Shown here: positions 1 to 5,795 of the stretch, piece by piece
Numbering within the stretch: the first letter of the stretch is position 1
Layout: each line of letters begins with the position of its first letter
Virus record (IMG/VR): IMGVR_UViG_3300026877_000103
Coordinates: 1 to 5,795 of that record
Strand: one strand, 5' to 3'
Length of the DNA: 5,795 nt
Program-made: the position numbers and the translations under genes
Notes under the pieces: model-generated
What the model saw: only the letters and a program-made list of their open reading frames with translations
Told to the model about the DNA's origin: nothing
Databases searched by the model: none

Positions 1-1017
1 ACAATTAATGACCTCTATGGCAAGATAGTAGGTATTCACGGAAATAAATTGATAATGGAGGTACTTGATTTCAATAACGGTTTGGAGGATCTACGCAATC
101 ATACGTTAAGGTTCGTAGGAAACCCGCAGGAGAGAATAGATGAGGATCCGCTTAGGATACTGAGGGGGATAAGGTTTATCCTTTACGGCTATAAAATGCC
201 CCCAGACCAATTAGAAATTATGAAGAAGAATGTTGATAAGCTGGGTGGGTTACCTATAGAGAGAATAAGGGATGAGATACTGAAAATACTAAAGGTTAAC
301 CCTGCGGAGGGGTTTGAACTACTTGACGAGTTCGGTCTGTTAAAATATCTCTATGGAGAACATTACGAGGCATTAATGAATACCTATCACGATTACAGGG
401 GTTCACACCACGGTGAGAACGTCATAGAACATACATATGAGGCGTTAAAGAGACTTAGAAACCCAGACATTGAAACAATATTAGCAGTAATTTACCACGA
501 CGTGGGCAAACCTTATACTATGAGCGAAAAGAACGGAAAAATAATGTTCATAGGTCATGCTAATAAGAGTGCAGAAATTGCAAAAGAATTAATGAAGAGG
601 CTAAAGTTACCTAACAACCTAATAAAGGACGTTACTAACTTAATAGAAATGCATATGGACTTCAATCTAGCACAGAATAACGAGAAGAACCAGGCACAAT
701 TAATTACTAAGTTAATGCCGTTATATGATTGGAACCCTGAGAAAGTAAGAGAGATATATAATAAACTAATAGAGCTATCTCACGCGGATACAGGGAGTGA
801 GAATATACTCAACATGTCCAACAGGATAACAAAACCGATTGTAACAGGAGAAGACATAATAAACACTTTTGGTGTGAGCGGAAACATAGTGATGCATTTG
901 AAGGAGAGAGCATATACTCTGCAACTGCTAGGGTACGATAAAGACGAGATAATGAGGATGTTGAAGGGTGATAACAAATTATACGAGTTTAGGAAGCTGT
1001 TAGAAAATTGGAGCTGA
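1..1017 (+). CDS. cca: Class II CCA tRNA nucleotidyltransferase / poly(A) polymerase family protein with HD phosphohydrolase domain (5'-truncated by window edge)
   Basis: Frame 1 is open from base 1 (TINDLYGKIVGIHGNKLIMEVLDFNNGLEDL...). TIN matches the tail of the RRDFTIN motif, so the real start is upstream of the window. Class II motifs follow: DxxxGxxDL, LRFVGNPQERIDEDPLRILRGIRF (EDxxR template motif at 142-156) and ERIRDE. HD-domain residues: EHT, YHDVGKP (HD at 496-501), FIGHA, EMHM, HAD. The C-terminal PIVTGEDI is typical of these enzymes. Stop TGA at 1015-1017. CCA versus CC/A/poly(A) specificity cannot be settled without the N-terminus. Confidence 0.88.
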   Translation, partial: TINDLYGKIVGIHGNKLIMEVLDFNNGLEDLRNHTLRFVGNPQERIDEDPLRILRGIRFILYGYKMPPDQLEIMKKNVDKLGGLPIERIRDEILKILKVNPAEGFELLDEFGLLKYLYGEHYEALMNTYHDYRGSHHGENVIEHTYEALKRLRNPDIETILAVIYHDVGKPYTMSEKNGKIMFIGHANKSAEIAKELMKRLKLPNNLIKDVTNLIEMHMDFNLAQNNEKNQAQLITKLMPLYDWNPEKVREIYNKLIELSHADTGSENILNMSNRITKPIVTGEDIINTFGVSGNIVMHLKERAYTLQLLGYDKDEIMRMLKGDNKLYEFRKLLENWS

Positions 1018-1027
1018 AGAGCATTAT

Positions 1028-1085
1028 CTGACTTCCTCCCCGCCCTGGAAGGGCGAGGCTTTCCGCTTCCTTAACCCCTTTCTTT
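1028..1085 (-). mobile_element. Minimal IS200/IS605-family remnant: left-end/right-end hybrid around a single hairpin, no transposase
   Basis: The minus strand reads TTAC|AAAGAAAGGGGTTAAGGAAGCGG-AAAG-CCTCGCCCT-TCC-AGGGCGGGG-AGGAAGTCAG|. This matches IS608 architecture: TTAC target 5' of the left end (1086-1089), AAAG guide at the hairpin foot (1059-1062), an imperfect 9-bp GC-rich hairpin (1038-1058), and a 10-nt tail ending TCAG (IS608 right end ends TCAA). Confidence 0.72.
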
Positions 1086-1110: not shown

Positions 1111-1356
1111 TTACATTGTGTTTTTGTTTAGTTTTTTGGATAGTTCGTCCAAAAGACGTTTATCCATCAGTAAAATGTCTGTAATGTCATCAATATATTC
1201 GTTCACTATGTCTTCTAGATCAGTACGATCAAACTCCACATCATCAACGTCAACGTCAACATAATCTTTGAAGTCGTTGCATATGATCCCTTCTTGCTTA
1301 TCGCAATCACAATTGTCCTCTAATCTACTATATTTTATGAACACTGGTACTTTCAT
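1111..1356 (-). CDS. Small highly acidic hypothetical protein (81 aa)
   Basis: ATG start preceded by a GTGAG SD-like element and a TATA box (TTTATATA, 1389-1396), with an oligo-T terminator downstream. It fills the gap between larger genes. 23 D/E versus 11 K/R, and three Cys (CDC..C). No family recognised. Confidence 0.75.
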   Translation of the reverse strand: MKVPVFIKYSRLEDNCDCDKQEGIICNDFKDYVDVDVDDVEFDRTDLEDIVNEYIDDITDILLMDKRLLDELSKKLNKNTM

Positions 1357-1375: not shown

Positions 1376-1415
1376 TATCAAAAACTGGTATATAAACCTC
1401 AAACAGCTGTTTGTG
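1376..1415 (-). promoter_or_regulatory. Archaeal promoter of the 81-aa gene with palindromic operator-like site
   Basis: Minus strand: CACAAACAGCTGTTTGAG-G-TTTATATA-CCAGTTTTTGATA. A perfect 14-bp palindrome CAAACAGCTGTTTG (1400-1413) sits just upstream of the TATA box, over the BRE position. Confidence 0.6.
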
Positions 1416-1431
1416 AGAGCGGAATACGGGT

Positions 1432-1465
1432 CTGATCCCCCTGGGAGGGTGAGGTTTCCCGCTCA
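1432..1465 (-). mobile_element. Second, degenerate IS200/IS605-like end
   Basis: Minus strand TGAGCGGGAAACCTCACCCTCCCAGGGGGATCAG aligns with GAAGCGGAAAGCCTCGCCCTTCCAGGGCGGGGAGGAAGTCAG of the 1028-1085 element in the same orientation, with a deletion in the 3' hairpin arm/tail. It is a GC-rich island in AT-rich DNA. Confidence 0.5.
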
Positions 1466-2131
1466 TTAACTTCCATTTAAAACTACGGAAAATATCGTAG
1501 TGTTTTGTGCATATATAACTAGAGTATTATCACATATGTACGATTTTACTTCTCCACCATCATGTGCCACTATTATGCTTCCATTTATTGGGTAGTATAA
1601 TGTCTGTTCTATCAGTGCTGTTCCATTTATTGTGATTTTTCCTTTTTGCACTGTTATATGCCCGTTATATAGTATCTGCCAGCCGTATTCCGATACACCA
1701 TACGATGAGTTGTATATTACAGTAAAACTAGGATTTACGATAGGATATACCGTACCTGCAGGAGCGAATCCGCTTATAGATAAGACAGCAGTTTGAGTAC
1801 TGTACAGGTAGAATGTAATTACATAGGGAGAGTTTTGTGAAATGGCAACAGTAGGATCTGGTGCCGTAACGTTTACTATAACATATTCGTGCGGTTTTAG
1901 GATTATTATGTTTTGGTACCAACGATGACTGTTAATTACCGGCACCAATACATATGTTTTATTGGTAGGGTTTTGTATGCATATCGTTAGCACGTTGTAC
2001 TTATTTATTTCTCCTACGTCGTAGAAATCCAGTACCTTTGCATGCAATTGTGGTTGATAGAAAAAAATAGAAAACGTGAAAAGGGATGGTATTATAACTG
2101 CTAAAATTAGTATGATTTCAAACTTTTGCAT
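1466..2131 (-). CDS. Membrane-anchored, beta-rich exported protein, probable glycoprotein (221 aa)
   Basis: N-terminal hydrophobic anchor (IILILAVIIPSLFTFSIFFY). The rest is rich in V/I/Y/T/N, with seven N-X-S/T sequons (NKT, NVT, NSS, NGT, NGS, NTT and a terminal NGS). The start overlaps the upstream gene by 14 bp and has a GGATGA SD-like element. Confidence 0.8.
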   Translation of the reverse strand: MQKFEIILILAVIIPSLFTFSIFFYQPQLHAKVLDFYDVGEINKYNVLTICIQNPTNKTYVLVPVINSHRWYQNIIILKPHEYVIVNVTAPDPTVAISQNSPYVITFYLYSTQTAVLSISGFAPAGTVYPIVNPSFTVIYNSSYGVSEYGWQILYNGHITVQKGKITINGTALIEQTLYYPINGSIIVAHDGGEVKSYICDNTLVIYAQNTTIFSVVLNGS

Positions 2132-3167
2132 CTTTCATCATCCATACTGCATATTGTAATGCAAAATAAAATGTAAAATATCCCAAATCTCTAAAAGAGA
2201 ATATCCATATTAACGCCGGAAGACCCCAAGCTAATTCTTTCTTATTATTATATAGTAGGATTAATGCAAAAAGAGACACCTCAAGTACGGTATACACGAA
2301 CGAGGGGATAGGTAAGCCGAACGCAGTAAGGAGTGAAAACGAAACGCCCTGCTGTGCAACAGGTTGTGTAATAGTTATAACGGACGCAAGGTATTGCTTT
2401 GAAATGAAGGGTATTGATGAGAGCAGTAGCGGTAACGCGAATTCTATTATCTTTCTAAGTTTCTGTCTTTCAAATTTAATTAGAAGAATAGCTATCAGTA
2501 TCGCAAACTGCTTTACGTCTGCAGAGATTCCTAGGAGCAGGTATCTGAATCTCTCATTAAGTAGGGCAAGAAACGCAATAGAATATGCAAAAAGGTTCAG
2601 TTCTTGCCCTGTCGCAAAATCATATGAAAGTGCAGGAAATAGGAAAAAAGATGCGATGAAAGCGTTTTCGTGTCTTTTGAGGAAGGAATACGTAAAAGCT
2701 AAAACAGCTGTTATTACGTTTACTGTTTCAAGGTTATGCAAAACCGCAACGCTGATGAACGATAATGGGGGGTAAATATAGACGGTCGGCAGAAATGAGT
2801 TTGACGTAGTGCCGGTAACAACGTTATACGGAACGTGATATATGAAAAATGCTTTAGTCATTGAATAAAGGTACGGGTTTTTTCCGTCGAGGAATAAGTG
2901 TGACGCGTATAATATTGTTGCTTCTTCATCCGTTAGGATAGGTAATCCTGTGATTATATTCACCACAGCTGTAATAGTAGCAATAGCAAAAGCCGAAACA
3001 ATGAGTATTCTTTGCCTTACGAATATAGAGATCATGCCTAAAGCAACAACGAGAAATGCTGTAGGCAATAAATACGGTTTTCCGTCACCTAAAAACGCTG
3101 ATCCCATGCTAACTAAACCCAGCCCTGCCAAAAACCATGATATATTATCTTTCAATTTTTCTTCCAT
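2118..3167 (-). CDS. Polytopic membrane protein, GT-C fold glycosyltransferase-like (GT87/DUF2029-type) (349 aa)
   Basis: Many predicted TM segments. An acidic TDEE motif lies in the first large loop, followed by GKNPY, YIYPPLSF and a later VKQF. This motif order is characteristic of GT87-like lipid-phosphate-sugar-dependent transferases. CDS reality is highly likely, the family call is moderate. Confidence 0.68.
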   Translation of the reverse strand: MEEKLKDNISWFLAGLGLVSMGSAFLGDGKPYLLPTAFLVVALGMISIFVRQRILIVSAFAIATITAVVNIITGLPILTDEEATILYASHLFLDGKNPYLYSMTKAFFIYHVPYNVVTGTTSNSFLPTVYIYPPLSFISVAVLHNLETVNVITAVLAFTYSFLKRHENAFIASFFLFPALSYDFATGQELNLFAYSIAFLALLNERFRYLLLGISADVKQFAILIAILLIKFERQKLRKIIEFALPLLLSSIPFISKQYLASVITITQPVAQQGVSFSLLTAFGLPIPSFVYTVLEVSLFALILLYNNKKELAWGLPALIWIFSFRDLGYFTFYFALQYAVWMMKDAKV

Positions 3168-3176
3168 AACCGACGC

Positions 3177-3827
3177 CTACAACCTATCGGTACTTATGGG
3201 GGTAATGCCTAACGTCTGTGCTATTTCGAGTGGAGACAGCATTTCTACTCTCATTTTCGATGTGCTTACTCCTGCAACTTCCATGATACTCCTTTCAAAC
3301 GCTAACAAAAGTAACACTACTAGTTTATGTGCCTCATTGAGCTTAGCTATTATATCATCATAATTTGCATCGCTTGATATCAAACTATGAAGCTCTGAAA
3401 ACTTTTCAGACAATTCGTCAATGGAAAGACTTGAAAACCTATCCGTCAAAATCGATAATAAAATCTGGAAATTATCATCTACGTTATATGGGGTGCCGTA
3501 GAACTGCAGAGACCCGCTCTTAAGATCTTTTGTTAAAATCAATACGTAATTGTTTAGGATTTCTTGCACAGTTGTTATTTTGATGGCTTCTTTTTGGGTC
3601 ACCTGCCTTGTAGGGATTATAGCTTTTTCCCTGATTGCTTGCCTGACCAGGTTTGGGTCAACTTTTACAATATTTCTTCGTCCAAGTGGTGATAATTGAG
3701 GTTGTTGTTGGGTTTGTTGTATTTGTGGAAATAGTTGCGGTGGTGCAGGCGTTGCCGTGTTTGCAGGTATTTCATATGTGGGTTCTTGTTGCTGTTGTTG
3801 TTTTTTATTGGAGTTATTTAGGCTCAT
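3177..3827 (-). CDS. Hypothetical protein with Q/P-rich low-complexity N-terminus and helical C-terminal domain (216 aa)
   Basis: ATG lies 24 nt downstream of the TATA box TTTTTAAA (3852-3859, minus), a leaderless geometry. The stop is 9 nt before the next ATG, making it the first gene of the operon. The N-terminus contains KKQQQQQEP and QIQQTQQQPQ. Confidence 0.8.
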   Translation of the reverse strand: MSLNNSNKKQQQQQEPTYEIPANTATPAPPQLFPQIQQTQQQPQLSPLGRRNIVKVDPNLVRQAIREKAIIPTRQVTQKEAIKITTVQEILNNYVLILTKDLKSGSLQFYGTPYNVDDNFQILLSILTDRFSSLSIDELSEKFSELHSLISSDANYDDIIAKLNEAHKLVVLLLLAFERSIMEVAGVSTSKMRVEMLSPLEIAQTLGITPISTDRL

Positions 3828-3925
3828 GATAATTTCTTTCCCCAGAAGTCATTTAAAAAGCTGGTTTTAAGGCTCAAACAGATGTTTGAGGAAAATTTTT
3901 AAGTTTCTGATGTTAGATGTTTTTT
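3828..3925. promoter_or_regulatory. Divergent archaeal promoter pair with central palindrome
   Basis: Minus-strand TATA TTTTTAAA at 3852-3859. Plus-strand GAAAA-TTTTTAAG (purine-rich BRE plus TATA) at 3891-3903. The inverted repeat CTCAAACA-GA-TGTTTGAG at 3873-3890 lies between them. Confidence 0.68.
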
Positions 3926-5674
3926 ATGCAATTACAAGAACAAGAAAAGAACAGTGAGATTTTGTCGTCTTCTGCTGATGTTTCTACTATTGCAAGACGT
4001 TTGAAGGACGAGTTAGATAAATATGTTGTCGGAAATGAAGACGTCAAAACAGCTGTAATAACAGGACTTCTGACAGGGTTTCCTACCCTGCTCATCGGAG
4101 ACCCAGGGACTGCAAAAACGTATACTATCGAGATCTTATCAAAAATGATCGATGGGGTTAAACCAGAAGAGCTTTTTATAGTACTCGCTCACGAGGCAAT
4201 GACACCAGAAGACATTTTTGGAAATACAAACCTAAAAAAATTGAGAGAAGAAGGAGTACTAGAATATATTACTGAAGGCTTCTTGCCTTCTGCTAAATTA
4301 GTTTTCATAGATGAGATTTTCAAGAGCAACAAAGTCCTTGCCGAATCGCTGTTTAGAGCGATTAACGAAAAGAAGTTCAGAAATGGAAGTAAAGAGATCT
4401 CGTTACCATGGCTAGCGTTCTTTTCTGCGTCAAACGAGGTGAGGGTGAATACACAAGCGGACAGAGCATTCCTCGATAGGTTCAAGATATTCGCTACGGT
4501 TCTTTCGCCTAACTTGGAAGACATACAAGATCTCAAATCAACCGCGGAAAGGTATTATAAAGTTCTTACGGCAACTAAGCCTGCTTTCATCCCAATTGTA
4601 ACGAGTTATGACGAAGTTAAAAAAATACAGGATAAAATTCTTTCAGATTACTCCAAATACACAACACAAGATATTGTACTCGAAGCGGTGAAGCAGGCTA
4701 ACCTCATCCTGGGTGCAATAGCACAGGCTTTGCAAAACCCAAGAGCGTTTGGTGATTCCGGAATTGTAAGGTCGTACTTCAAATCGATGGGCGGATATCT
4801 GACAATCAGCGAGAGAAAATTCAAAAGTATAATGCAAGTCGCTAACGCGTTACGTGAAATGTTCGGCAATTCAACAATTACACCAGTGCATACTGCATTA
4901 GCGTTCTATCTTACAATTCCATTCACACCAGAGCTAAAGAATATAGTATCCCCTCTAGTCTCGTCATTGATCAAATCGTATTTCAACACAAATACATCGA
5001 ATAAGTCTTCTATTGATATTAATAGCTTGGTAAAAAGTATTTCCAAAACAGCAGAGAAAATCTTCACGGACGAAAACCTAAATAAGTTACTAGACGAAAC
5101 GTCGGCTTACGCTGTAGATGTTATTACTAAATCATTTCCAGCGTCGTCACCCGATTTAGCAAAAGATAGAGCAGATCTTGTTAAGAAATTTTTGGAGGTA
5201 ACAAATAGTACTGGTGACACACTGTATAAGTTGAATAATTTTATAAAAGCTGTAGGTACCTTAAACGATATTGCAACTAGGTACGCCAATAATATTAAAA
5301 TTAGGACTTTAGCACAGAAACTGCTTCAAAGTGTTGTATCTACTGTCTCTGACAAGATAGATATAGATCGTATAAAAGCTAATGCGATGACCGAGCTTGA
5401 TAAAACTTATAACAAGATAAAAGCTGAAATTGAAAGTAAATTTAACGAACTAATGAAACTAGGAGAGAGCGACGAGAACAGTAAACTCATCTCTGGGATA
5501 CAAAAATTCTTCCCGCAATTTTCTAACGCATTACCAGAAGCAGTGGTAAACCAAGAGCAAAAAGAAGTAATAATGAAGAGTCTTGACAATACTATAGGTG
5601 AAGTAAGGACTAAAATACTAGATTTCATAGACACATTAGAAAAAACTAAGAAGATACTTTCGCAAATTAAGTGA
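3926..5674 (+). CDS. MoxR-family (RavA-like) AAA+ ATPase with long helical C-terminal extension; resembles bicaudavirus ATPases of the ATV p618 type
   Basis: YVVGNEDV N-linker, Walker A GDPGTAKT (4097-4120), TPEDIFG, GFLPSA, Walker B LVFIDEIFK, sensor I SASNE, Arg finger AFLDRF and sensor II-like ISERK. The ORF track starts at 3917, but ATG 3926 is 22 nt after the TATA box and fits a leaderless start better (582 aa). Confidence 0.88.
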   Translation: MQLQEQEKNSEILSSSADVSTIARRLKDELDKYVVGNEDVKTAVITGLLTGFPTLLIGDPGTAKTYTIEILSKMIDGVKPEELFIVLAHEAMTPEDIFGNTNLKKLREEGVLEYITEGFLPSAKLVFIDEIFKSNKVLAESLFRAINEKKFRNGSKEISLPWLAFFSASNEVRVNTQADRAFLDRFKIFATVLSPNLEDIQDLKSTAERYYKVLTATKPAFIPIVTSYDEVKKIQDKILSDYSKYTTQDIVLEAVKQANLILGAIAQALQNPRAFGDSGIVRSYFKSMGGYLTISERKFKSIMQVANALREMFGNSTITPVHTALAFYLTIPFTPELKNIVSPLVSSLIKSYFNTNTSNKSSIDINSLVKSISKTAEKIFTDENLNKLLDETSAYAVDVITKSFPASSPDLAKDRADLVKKFLEVTNSTGDTLYKLNNFIKAVGTLNDIATRYANNIKIRTLAQKLLQSVVSTVSDKIDIDRIKANAMTELDKTYNKIKAEIESKFNELMKLGESDENSKLISGIQKFFPQFSNALPEAVVNQEQKEVIMKSLDNTIGEVRTKILDFIDTLEKTKKILSQIK

Positions 5675-5679
5675 GAGTT

Positions 5680-5795
5680 ATGCAAAGCTTCTTTAATAAT
5701 AATGAAGATGAAGAGAGACAACTAACAGAACTAACAGACACTATCTTTGAAACAGTGATAAAGGATTTAAAATCTAAGTCTCGTTATCTCACAAT
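5680..5795 (+). CDS. 5' end of downstream gene (partial), possibly the VWA-domain partner of the MoxR ATPase
   Basis: ATG 5 nt after the ATPase stop, with a GTGAG SD-like element overlapping that stop. The frame is open to the window end (MQSFFNNNEDEERQLTELTDTIFETVIKDLKSKSRYLT). VWA identity is inferred only from the usual MoxR-VWA pairing. Confidence 0.6.
   Translation, partial: MQSFFNNNEDEERQLTELTDTIFETVIKDLKSKSRYLT

Follow-up and report, generated by a model that had tools for sequence, protein, structure and literature searches.

A class II tRNA nucleotidyltransferase/HD gene in the accessory region of a Sulfolobales tailed spindle virus: a candidate for tRNA-end repair

Locus and Sequence Data

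The stretch of DNA analysed here (the window) is the complete IMG/VR contig IMGVR_UViG_3300026877_000103 (label L003; 5,795 nt). Its left end carries the greater part of a gene that almost certainly specifies a class II nucleotidyltransferase fused to an HD domain, and to the right of this lie a small acidic open reading frame (ORF) and a module of genes resembling those of Sulfolobus monocaudavirus SMV1. Since the window is an entire contig, its own upstream sequence, and with it the catalytic head of this copy of the enzyme, is absent from the data. The copy on contig L004 (98% identical; L004:3745–5100) stands in for the missing upstream part, and a full-length reference set was formed by the 450–452 aa proteins of Acidianus tailed spindle virus (ATSV, label L001) and of contigs L004, L005, L006 and L007. 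SMV1 is labelled L002; L004–L007, L121 and L122 are contigs of the window's lineage, and L008, L009, L094, L100, L101 and L102 are contigs carrying distant members of the enzyme clade. Residue conservation was judged across 35 relatives, an AlphaFold2 (AF2) structure model was built for the L004 protein and Foldseek was used for fold comparison. The phylogenetic tree was reconstructed by maximum likelihood from 62 sequences (quick search, LG+G4 model), with branch support from the Shimodaira–Hasegawa-like approximate likelihood ratio test (SH-aLRT).

The Transferase/HD Gene

Reading frame 1 of the plus strand is open from the first base with no stop codon upstream, so the gene runs off the 5' end of the contig. 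What is present is its 3' three-quarters (nt 1–1017), comprising 338 codons and a TGA stop at nt 1015–1017. The encoded protein begins with TIN (nt 1–9, residues 1–3), aligned with the last three residues of a motif B that reads RRDFTIN in full-length relatives, and continues with an extended beta-hairpin between motifs B and C (nt 13–66, residues 5–22). Both the alignment and the AF2 model place this hairpin, the strands of which are residues 120–127 and 130–136 in full-length numbering; compared with E. coli Cca and bacterial homologues it has about 8–10 additional residues, a peculiarity of the enzyme clade that the relatives P0025 and P0027 share. The motif C region (DFNNGLEDL...LRF; nt 67–114, residues 23–38) contains D137, G141, D144 and R151 (full-length numbering), all invariant or nearly so in the 35 relatives, and alignment places motif D, EDPLRILRGIRF, which includes EDPLR, at nt 142–177 (residues 48–59). 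In class II enzymes, the EDxxR...R pattern of motif D is the nucleotide-selecting element. Next is the RNA-binding neck domain (PolyA_pol_RNAbd, Pfam PF12627; nt 187–354, residues 63–118; 5.2e-11, 42.6 bits against a cutoff of 22), within which motif E, ERIRDE, is found at nt 259–276 (residues 87–92).

The HD/HDIG phosphohydrolase domain spans nt 406–789 and is recognised by Pfam HD (6.3e-10, 39.8 bits, cutoff 22) and by the NCBIfam HDIG model TIGR00277 (33.3 bits, cutoff 27.6). It includes H136, H144, H166-D167 (within YHDVGKP), K170, H186, H218 and D263, residues that are invariant or nearly invariant in the 35 relatives and have one-to-one counterparts in the aligned HD domain of E. coli Cca. 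The remainder of the protein (PIVTGEDI...; nt 835–1014) is a helical C-terminal tail, the helices of which correspond to residues 397–451 of the AF2 model; bacterial CCA enzymes that contain an HD domain have a tail that aligns with it. Several NCBIfam CCA-enzyme models also match the window protein in part (best 1.2e-29). The motif and domain matches are far beyond chance. The original prediction, which was made from the letters of the window alone, had reported class II motifs (TIN, EDPLR, ERIRDE) together with a complete HD metal-binding set, and all of these are present at nt 1–1017, with the Pfam neck and HD matches and the NCBIfam HDIG match above their cutoffs.

The ratio of nonsynonymous to synonymous substitution rates (dN/dS) is 0.06–0.27 among five copies of the transferase gene, which is under purifying selection. 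The GC content of the gene is 38%, against 37% in the rest of the window. By this match in composition and the low dN/dS, the gene is not a recent import. At third codon positions, as a separate observation, the GC fraction is 0.44 in the transferase (nt 1–1014) and 0.35–0.36 in the neighbouring viral genes (nt 2118–5674) despite the equal overall GC, which may hint faintly at a foreign origin or at different expression.

Full-Length Relatives and Phylogeny

The ATSV protein ATSV_C450 (AME30106.1) shares 91.7% identity with the window protein over all 338 residues. It is named 'poly-A polymerase' in GenBank and 'tRNA nucleotidyltransferase' in RefSeq, and PHROGs places the family in phrog_2244, 'tRNA nucleotidyltransferase' (2.3e-76). 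The original prediction had been unable to say whether homologues were already annotated in related viruses; they are, in the form of ATSV_C450 and phrog_2244, and the gene is therefore not new. The window copy starts downstream of motif A, the catalytic DxD of which had been expected in the upstream sequence. In each of the five full-length relatives, which are 88–98% identical to the window protein over the shared part, motif A (GGTVRD, then DLD) and motif B (RRDFTIN) are intact, and R111, R112 and N117 of motif B are invariant in 35 sequences. The head domain scores 73.4 bits in these relatives (Pfam PF01743, cutoff 23) and the neck domain 42–48 bits (PF12627, cutoff 22), and the HD domain is likewise above its cutoff. 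The promoter-proximal sequence of ATSV_C450 matches that of L004–L007.

A search of 1.84 billion representative proteins placed the viral group in a single cluster, after which identity drops to 42% (P0025), with the rest at 30–45%; about 24 metagenome clusters lie at 52–100% identity. No close relative, cellular or proviral, was found in 185,579 species genomes, and the best 80 distant cellular relatives, among the matches listed, are all bacterial (28–35% identity). The description of the enzyme as a bacterial-type class II protein, given in the original prediction, agrees with both the class motifs and this list of cellular relatives.

The tree recovers the viral group as monophyletic (SH-aLRT 100), nested within a 28-member clade (SH-aLRT 99) made up of uncultured sequences only. 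All named bacterial enzymes, E. coli Cca, the enzyme of the phage Tunturi_5 and PcnB fall outside this clade, PcnB being the most distant sequence in the tree. E. coli Cca groups with the enzymes of a Vibrio phage and the haloarchaeal virus HGTV-1 in a well-supported clade, and Tunturi_5 with Acidobacteria-like enzymes. The ten contigs of the 28-member clade that were inspected hold many genes with no known domain, and four of them carry archaeal or archaeal-virus marker genes, namely an STIV B116-like protein and a von Willebrand factor A (VWA) protein on L008, TFIIB and the primase large subunit (PriL) on L009, Hjc on the hydrothermal-vent contig L094, and MCM and PCNA on L100. The immediate relatives look like a branch living in archaeal viruses and mobile elements, with no identifiable bacterial donor, and the tree suggests a previously undescribed branch of class II enzymes.

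Structure and Enzymatic Subtype

The AF2 model of the L004 protein has a predicted local distance difference test score (pLDDT) of 93.1 and a predicted template modelling score (pTM) of 0.87. Compared with class II structures overall, it gave E values of 1e-15 to 1e-9 and template modelling (TM) scores of 0.5–0.7, in agreement with the seahorse fold of these enzymes; the best Foldseek matches in the PDB were class II CCA-adding enzymes of human mitochondria, T. maritima, Planococcus and B. stearothermophilus (4e-15 to 1e-12). The best NCBIfam score was obtained with the CCA model TIGR02692 (177.5 bits), ahead of the PcnB model (126 bits), and none of the pcnB model cutoffs was reached (TIGR01942, 126 against 305.65; NF008634, 94 against 702). 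After motif A, bacterial poly(A) polymerase (PAP) I carries a signature (GRRFRLAH in E. coli PcnB) that the viral protein does not share, its sequence at that position being GIPFGVLRI; PcnB is without the HD domain that the viral protein keeps intact. No class I CCA-enzyme family was found among the Pfam or NCBIfam matches of the viral protein.

In CC-adding enzymes, the flexible loop between motifs A and B is deleted. The corresponding viral loop (RKERY..SKPTVELGASLEED) is within 1–2 residues of the length seen in named bacterial CCA enzymes, the references of this alignment, and this normal length may weakly disfavour a CC-adding enzyme. Judged by homology, CCA specificity of the viral transferase is probable. 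The HD domain of E. coli Cca is known for 2',3'-cyclic phosphodiesterase and phosphatase activity, and that protein is called 'fused CCA tRNA nucleotidyltransferase/phosphohydrolase' in RefSeq and 'multifunctional CCA addition/repair protein' in NCBIfam.

Viral Setting and Neighbouring Genes

Nucleotide comparison showed 91.5% identity to ATSV for bases 1–1022 and 93% identity to SMV1 for bases 1400–5795, with the gene order of SMV1 kept. The archaeal-virus setting proposed in the original prediction is borne out by these matches, on the strength of which the window is assigned to a large tailed spindle virus of Sulfolobales, similar to SMV1 and ATSV (Bicaudaviridae). The SMV1-like conserved module (nt 1466–5795, both strands), delimited by identity to SMV1 and by Pfam and PHROG matches, contains a 221-aa membrane-protein gene (nt 1466–2131), a 349-aa membrane-protein gene (nt 2118–3167) and a 216-aa gene (nt 3177–3827), all on the minus strand, followed on the plus strand by a MoxR AAA+ ATPase (nt 3917–5674; Pfam bpMoxR, 1.8e-31) and by the start of a further ORF (nt 5680–5795), which lies at the position of the SMV1 von Willebrand factor A gene. 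The MoxR protein carries a C-terminal extension of about 375 residues, for which there were no domain matches beyond weak, spurious ones, and its AAA+ part gave a weak PADLOC match (6e-06) to RtcR_PspF1--CARF_AAA_HTH.

The order of genes in the module recurs in L005, L006, L007 and L121, and in L004 to the end of that contig. The junction of transferase, small acidic ORF and 221-aa gene is repeated in L004, L005, L006 and L121, each of which goes on, to the extent that its contig allows, into the 349-aa gene, the 216-aa gene and MoxR; L007 keeps the gene order with other small genes in between. The contigs confirming junction and gene order come from at least four other samples, so the window is not chimeric at nt ~1020–1400, where the best-matching reference changes; the original prediction had considered a join at about nt 1020–1090.

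Compared with SMV1, the lineage of the window has an extra 3–4.5 kb between a conserved 217-aa gene and the 221-aa membrane-protein gene, a site at which SMV1 has only a miniature inverted-repeat transposable element (MITE) and about 500 bp. The insert holds a 325–470-aa protein, in some contigs a KwaA-like gene, the transferase and one or two small genes. As no homologue of the transferase occurs in SMV1–4, it is an accessory gene in a variable hot spot. A 455-aa gene just upstream of the transferase (L004, L005, L007), which has no known domain, was considered as a functional partner and rejected, since homologues with 36–48% identity lie at ~2.2–3.6 kb in SMV1, SMV3 and SMV4, which lack the transferase. 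The hosts of SMV1 on record are Sulfolobus (Saccharolobus) solfataricus P2 and S. islandicus REY15A (database record).

In three contigs of the window's lineage, a KwaA-like gene is situated divergently upstream of the transferase (L005 nt 5367–6026, L007 nt 8315–8986 and L122 nt 331–825, all on the minus strand). The products match KwaA, which in the Kiwa anti-phage system is the membrane component (PADLOC, 7e-11 to 2e-10; Pfam PF28043). Its partner KwaB was not seen, and a virus-borne KwaA-like protein may be a decoy or an exclusion factor. ATSV_D139, which is encoded upstream of C450, was considered as a KwaA-like protein and rejected, as it shows no similarity. Near distant members of the enzyme clade, a Csx3 (ring nuclease family) gene on L100 (nt 9679–9996) ends 5 nt before the transferase, and an AbiEii-family transferase toxin homologue on L102 ends 10 nt before it; L102 also holds an Rnl1-like RNA ligase (the features of this contig lie at nt 8478–9479 and 17669–19027), and a homologue of the release factor eRF1 is found close beside the transferase on L101 (nt 11956–12558).

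An ATSV gene annotated as 'phosphatase' (L001 nt 1625–2143) corresponds to the HAD phosphatase domain of polynucleotide kinase-phosphatase (PNKP) without the kinase domain. Pfam HAD_PNKP scores are 40–44 bits (cutoff 27.6), and the gene is also present in L005 and L007 (nt 3383–3880, minus strand). SMV3, SMV4, YNP1 and YNP2 encode a PNKP-type 3'-phosphatase without having the transferase; the phosphatase is common among spindle viruses of Sulfolobales whether or not they have the transferase. No tRNA gene was found in ten related loci, and the enzyme can therefore not be explained, as is usual for large phages, by the maturation of viral tRNAs. What goes beyond the existing annotation of the gene is its distinct uncultured clade, its location in an accessory hot spot and its conflict-type neighbours.

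Proposed Function and Alternatives

The head–neck–HD architecture suggests, by homology, a heal-and-extend mechanism. The HD domain would remove a 2',3'-cyclic phosphate or a 3'- or 2'-phosphate from a clipped tRNA tail, after which the nucleotidyltransferase would re-add the missing C, C and A from CTP and ATP; repaired host tRNAs could then be recharged, and viral protein synthesis would continue. The likeliest source of the damage would be metal-independent host RNases of defence or toxin systems, with heat damage as a secondary source. The tRNA substrate, CCA specificity and phosphoesterase activity are all predicted from homologous enzymes, and from these and the setting of the gene we also infer the counter-defence purpose. 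Repair or maintenance of tRNA ends is the preferred reading and appears reasonably probable; a counter-defence role specifically is put forward tentatively. The narrower and somewhat more doubtful proposal is that an enzyme lineage seen only on uncultured contigs, several of them resembling archaeal viruses or mobile elements, would heal tails clipped by HEPN-type RNases, which leave cyclic-phosphate ends, as a means of counter-defence.

Every tRNA tail contains a C–C bond. One candidate damager would be Csx1 activated by cyclic tetra-adenylate (cA4), which has a preference for C–C bonds, a preference described as strong for the S. islandicus enzyme acting on phosphodiester bonds (PMC6754442). 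The HEPN toxins of HEPN/minimal nucleotidyltransferase (MNT) pairs would be another, and such pairs are listed for S. solfataricus genomes in a supplement of PMC11065993. Cleavage of the CCA tail of tRNA is a demonstrated immune strategy, viral escape from which was described as 'yet unknown'; the tail being common to every tRNA, viral tRNA genes offer no evasion (PMC12851939). The same article cites a HEPN toxin paper (its reference 51) for tRNA tail cleavage in other cellular processes. CCA-adding enzymes of phages have been proposed to act in tRNA repair during host conflicts (PMC7824862).

Virus-borne phosphate removal and tail rebuilding would be an obvious way of escaping immunity that cleaves the CCA tail. 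If the counter-defence reading is true, the enzyme would be the first viral countermeasure to be identified against immunity that cleaves tRNA tails; if it is an ordinary helper in tRNA maturation, the result is a routine annotation. We know of no demonstrated case of viral escape by tail rebuilding. Close relatives with the gene (ATSV and the lineage of the window) and without it (SMV1–4) provide a clean test bed, and S. solfataricus P2 and S. islandicus REY15A are genetically tractable, possess type III CRISPR systems with Csx1 and carry many HEPN-MNT pairs. Because the host enzyme belongs to the unrelated class I, the activity of the viral class II enzyme is separable from it both genetically and biochemically. 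The placement of the clade also bears on the route by which a 'bacterial' enzyme class entered archaeal viruses.

Several points weigh against tRNA-end repair and counter-defence. The window copy lacks the 5' 114 codons, which would specify the head domain and motif A, since the contig begins downstream of them. SMV1–4 do well without the transferase, which makes it dispensable, and for both candidate damagers, Csx1 and the HEPN toxins, clipping of the tail in vivo is assumed. The Csx3, AbiEii and eRF1-like neighbours belong to relatives only 32–35% identical to the viral protein, on three of the ten contigs examined, and the PNKP-type phosphatase was rejected as an obligatory partner given its occurrence in viruses without the transferase (SMV3, SMV4 and YNP1/2). 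The annotation of the ~59 kb of ATSV that were examined includes neither an RNA ligase nor a tRNA gene, no PADLOC defence model matches the transferase, and neither ATSV nor the protein accession appears in the searchable supplements of PMC11065993, the gene not being among the early and anti-defence genes predicted there. With regard to specificity, A-adding enzymes and poly(A) polymerase follow the CCA enzymes within a few orders of magnitude in Foldseek E value; CCA-adding, A-adding and poly(A) enzymes are separated here by neither sequence nor fold, and the fold does not decide the subtype. None of the NCBIfam CCA equivalog cutoffs is reached (TIGR02692, 177.5 against 438.8; NF009814, 127.2 against 290; NF008137, 106.4 against 451), and we therefore classify the protein as an HD-containing class II transferase of probable CCA specificity.

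A rather unlikely alternative to repair after host attack is that the enzyme is a housekeeping supplement, raising the capacity for CCA addition and renewal during the burst of viral protein synthesis and having no link to host RNases. Sulfolobales tRNA genes are largely without an encoded CCA and tails decay at 80 °C, which would be reasons for such a supplement. The architecture equals that of ordinary cellular CCA enzymes, the gene is patchy in distribution and dispensable, and there is neither a PADLOC match nor an entry in the lists of predicted anti-defence genes searched (PMC11065993), all of which would suit a housekeeping role. The ten loci, however, have no viral tRNA genes in need of maturing, and the accessory neighbours are of a conflict type (KwaA-like in the lineage of the window; Csx3 and AbiEii in relatives). 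The host, moreover, already has a class I enzyme, and retention of the HD domain speaks for substrates with damaged, phosphorylated ends and not for simple maturation.

An improbable reading is that of a poly(A) or RNA-tailing polymerase that marks host or viral RNAs for decay or stabilisation. The GenBank name of the 92%-identical ATSV_C450 ('poly-A polymerase') speaks for it, as do the best PDB sequence matches, which are E. coli PAP I structures (3.8e-23), the identity of motif D in PAP and CCA enzymes, and the use of A-rich tails by the Sulfolobales exosome. It is opposed by the replacement of the PAP I signature after motif A (GIPFGVLRI instead of GRRFRLAH), by an intact HD domain of a kind that PcnB lacks, by a pcnB model score (126 bits) that is far from its cutoff of 305.65 and below that of the CCA model, and by the naming of the family as tRNA nucleotidyltransferase in RefSeq and PHROGs. 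It is very improbable that the HD domain is the business end, acting as a phosphodiesterase on immune second messengers or phosphorylated small molecules while the transferase serves as an RNA- or nucleotide-binding scaffold. HD domains do hydrolyse many nucleotide signals, all of the HD metal ligands are conserved here and in one relative the gene shares an operon with a homologue of the ring nuclease Csx3; yet the transferase residues DxD, RRD and EDxxR are conserved with equal strictness, it is specifically the HD domain of CCA enzymes with which the viral one aligns, and at least two relatives in the clade (P0025 and P0033) are without a Pfam HD score but have kept the transferase. Least credible of all is an artefact, either a chimeric assembly or a decaying fragment of bacterial origin. 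The gene is indeed cut by the contig end and the two halves of the window match different reference viruses (nt 1–1022 ATSV, nt 1400–5795 SMV1), but the recurrence of the junction or gene order in contigs from at least four other samples, the open frame, dN/dS well below 1, the similar GC content (38% and 37%) and the lack of any close relative among 185,579 species genomes all speak against it.

Comparison with Known Systems

ATSV_C450 has the same domains as the window protein, 91.5% identity at the DNA level and membership in the same group of large tailed spindle viruses (Bicaudaviridae). The ATSV gene differs in its surroundings, being near an integrase and followed by a different small gene, whereas in the lineage of the window the 217-aa gene and the 221-aa membrane-protein gene of an SMV1-like backbone flank the region that holds the transferase. 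The resemblance to E. coli Cca extends to the order of head, neck and HD domains, motifs A–E and the aligned HD ligands, and model NF008137 covers residues 24–367 of the full-length relative. The two differ in that identity is only about 29%, that they fall into separate, well-supported clades and that E. coli Cca has a shorter hairpin between motifs B and C. The C-terminal tail of the viral protein is like that of bacterial HD-containing enzymes from uncultured lineages and unlike that of E. coli Cca, and its activities are predicted ones. E. coli PcnB shares the head and neck domains and motif D and is among the top PDB sequence matches, but it has no HD domain and its own signature after motif A is missing from the viral protein.

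Other virus-encoded class II enzymes with the same fold are the tRNA nucleotidyltransferases of phages and giant viruses (phrog_2244, with members in mycobacteriophages, jumbo phages and the Halogranum virus HGTV-1, gp242). Phages and giant viruses with such enzymes usually carry many tRNA genes, whereas none of the ten loci considered here has any; the enzymes of HGTV-1, the Vibrio phage and Tunturi_5 also fall outside the clade described here. In phage T4, Pnkp and Rnl1 repair tRNA that has been cut by the host anticodon nuclease PrrC. The proposed repair of tRNA tails would be alike in principle, with a virus healing tRNA cut by a suicide RNase of its host, and ATSV, L005 and L007 encode a homologue of PNKP-type phosphatases. 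The T4 system differs in acting on the anticodon loop by ligation instead of on the 3' tail by re-synthesis, and the examined parts of ATSV have no annotated ligase. Archaeal hosts use a class I CCA-adding enzyme, which presumably carries out the same reaction and is of an unrelated class; the viral enzyme would be its non-orthologous duplicate.

Other Features of the Window

The small ORF directly downstream of the transferase (nt 1111–1356, minus strand; phrog_17634) is part of the accessory cassette and specifies a very acidic protein of 81 aa with cysteines, including runs of D and E and a CDCD...C cluster. It is found in the same place in L004, L005 and L006. In its size and charge the protein recalls DNA-mimic or anti-defence proteins. 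The sole Rfam match in the window was HgcC at nt 1015–1191 on the minus strand (20.3 bits against a gathering score of 50; E 0.19), and it was treated as a chance match.

A GC-rich element of about 50 nt lies directly downstream of the transferase (nt 1035–1085, plus strand), and a second copy, detected as a repeat match, is found at nt 1430–1470 (plus strand). Its core is CCCTGGAAGGG...GGCTTTCCGC..CTTAACC, and it is intergenic in these AT-rich genomes. Further matches occur in SMV1 (L002:4374–4435), where the copy abuts MITE-SMN2, in L004 (L004:3436–3479, opposite strand) and in L005 (L005:15015–15065). The accessory genes are flanked by the element: the two direct copies in the window bracket the 81-aa gene, and in L004 an inverted copy lies upstream of the transferase. 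The element was considered as a structured RNA and rejected, as its folding z-scores (0.05–0.67, both strands) are no better than those of shuffled sequences; it could be a site of recombination or mobility, or a terminator.

A near-perfect palindrome, CAAACAGCTGTTTG or CAAACAGATGTTTG, is present in two promoter regions with adjoining TATA-like boxes. One site (nt 1398–1411, CAAACAGCTGTTTG) is located between the 81-aa and 221-aa genes and the other (nt 3873–3886) between the 216-aa gene and MoxR. In the conserved promoter of the transferase in relatives, a TATA-like box is flanked by AAACAG and ATGTTT. The palindrome is possibly an operator for a viral regulator.

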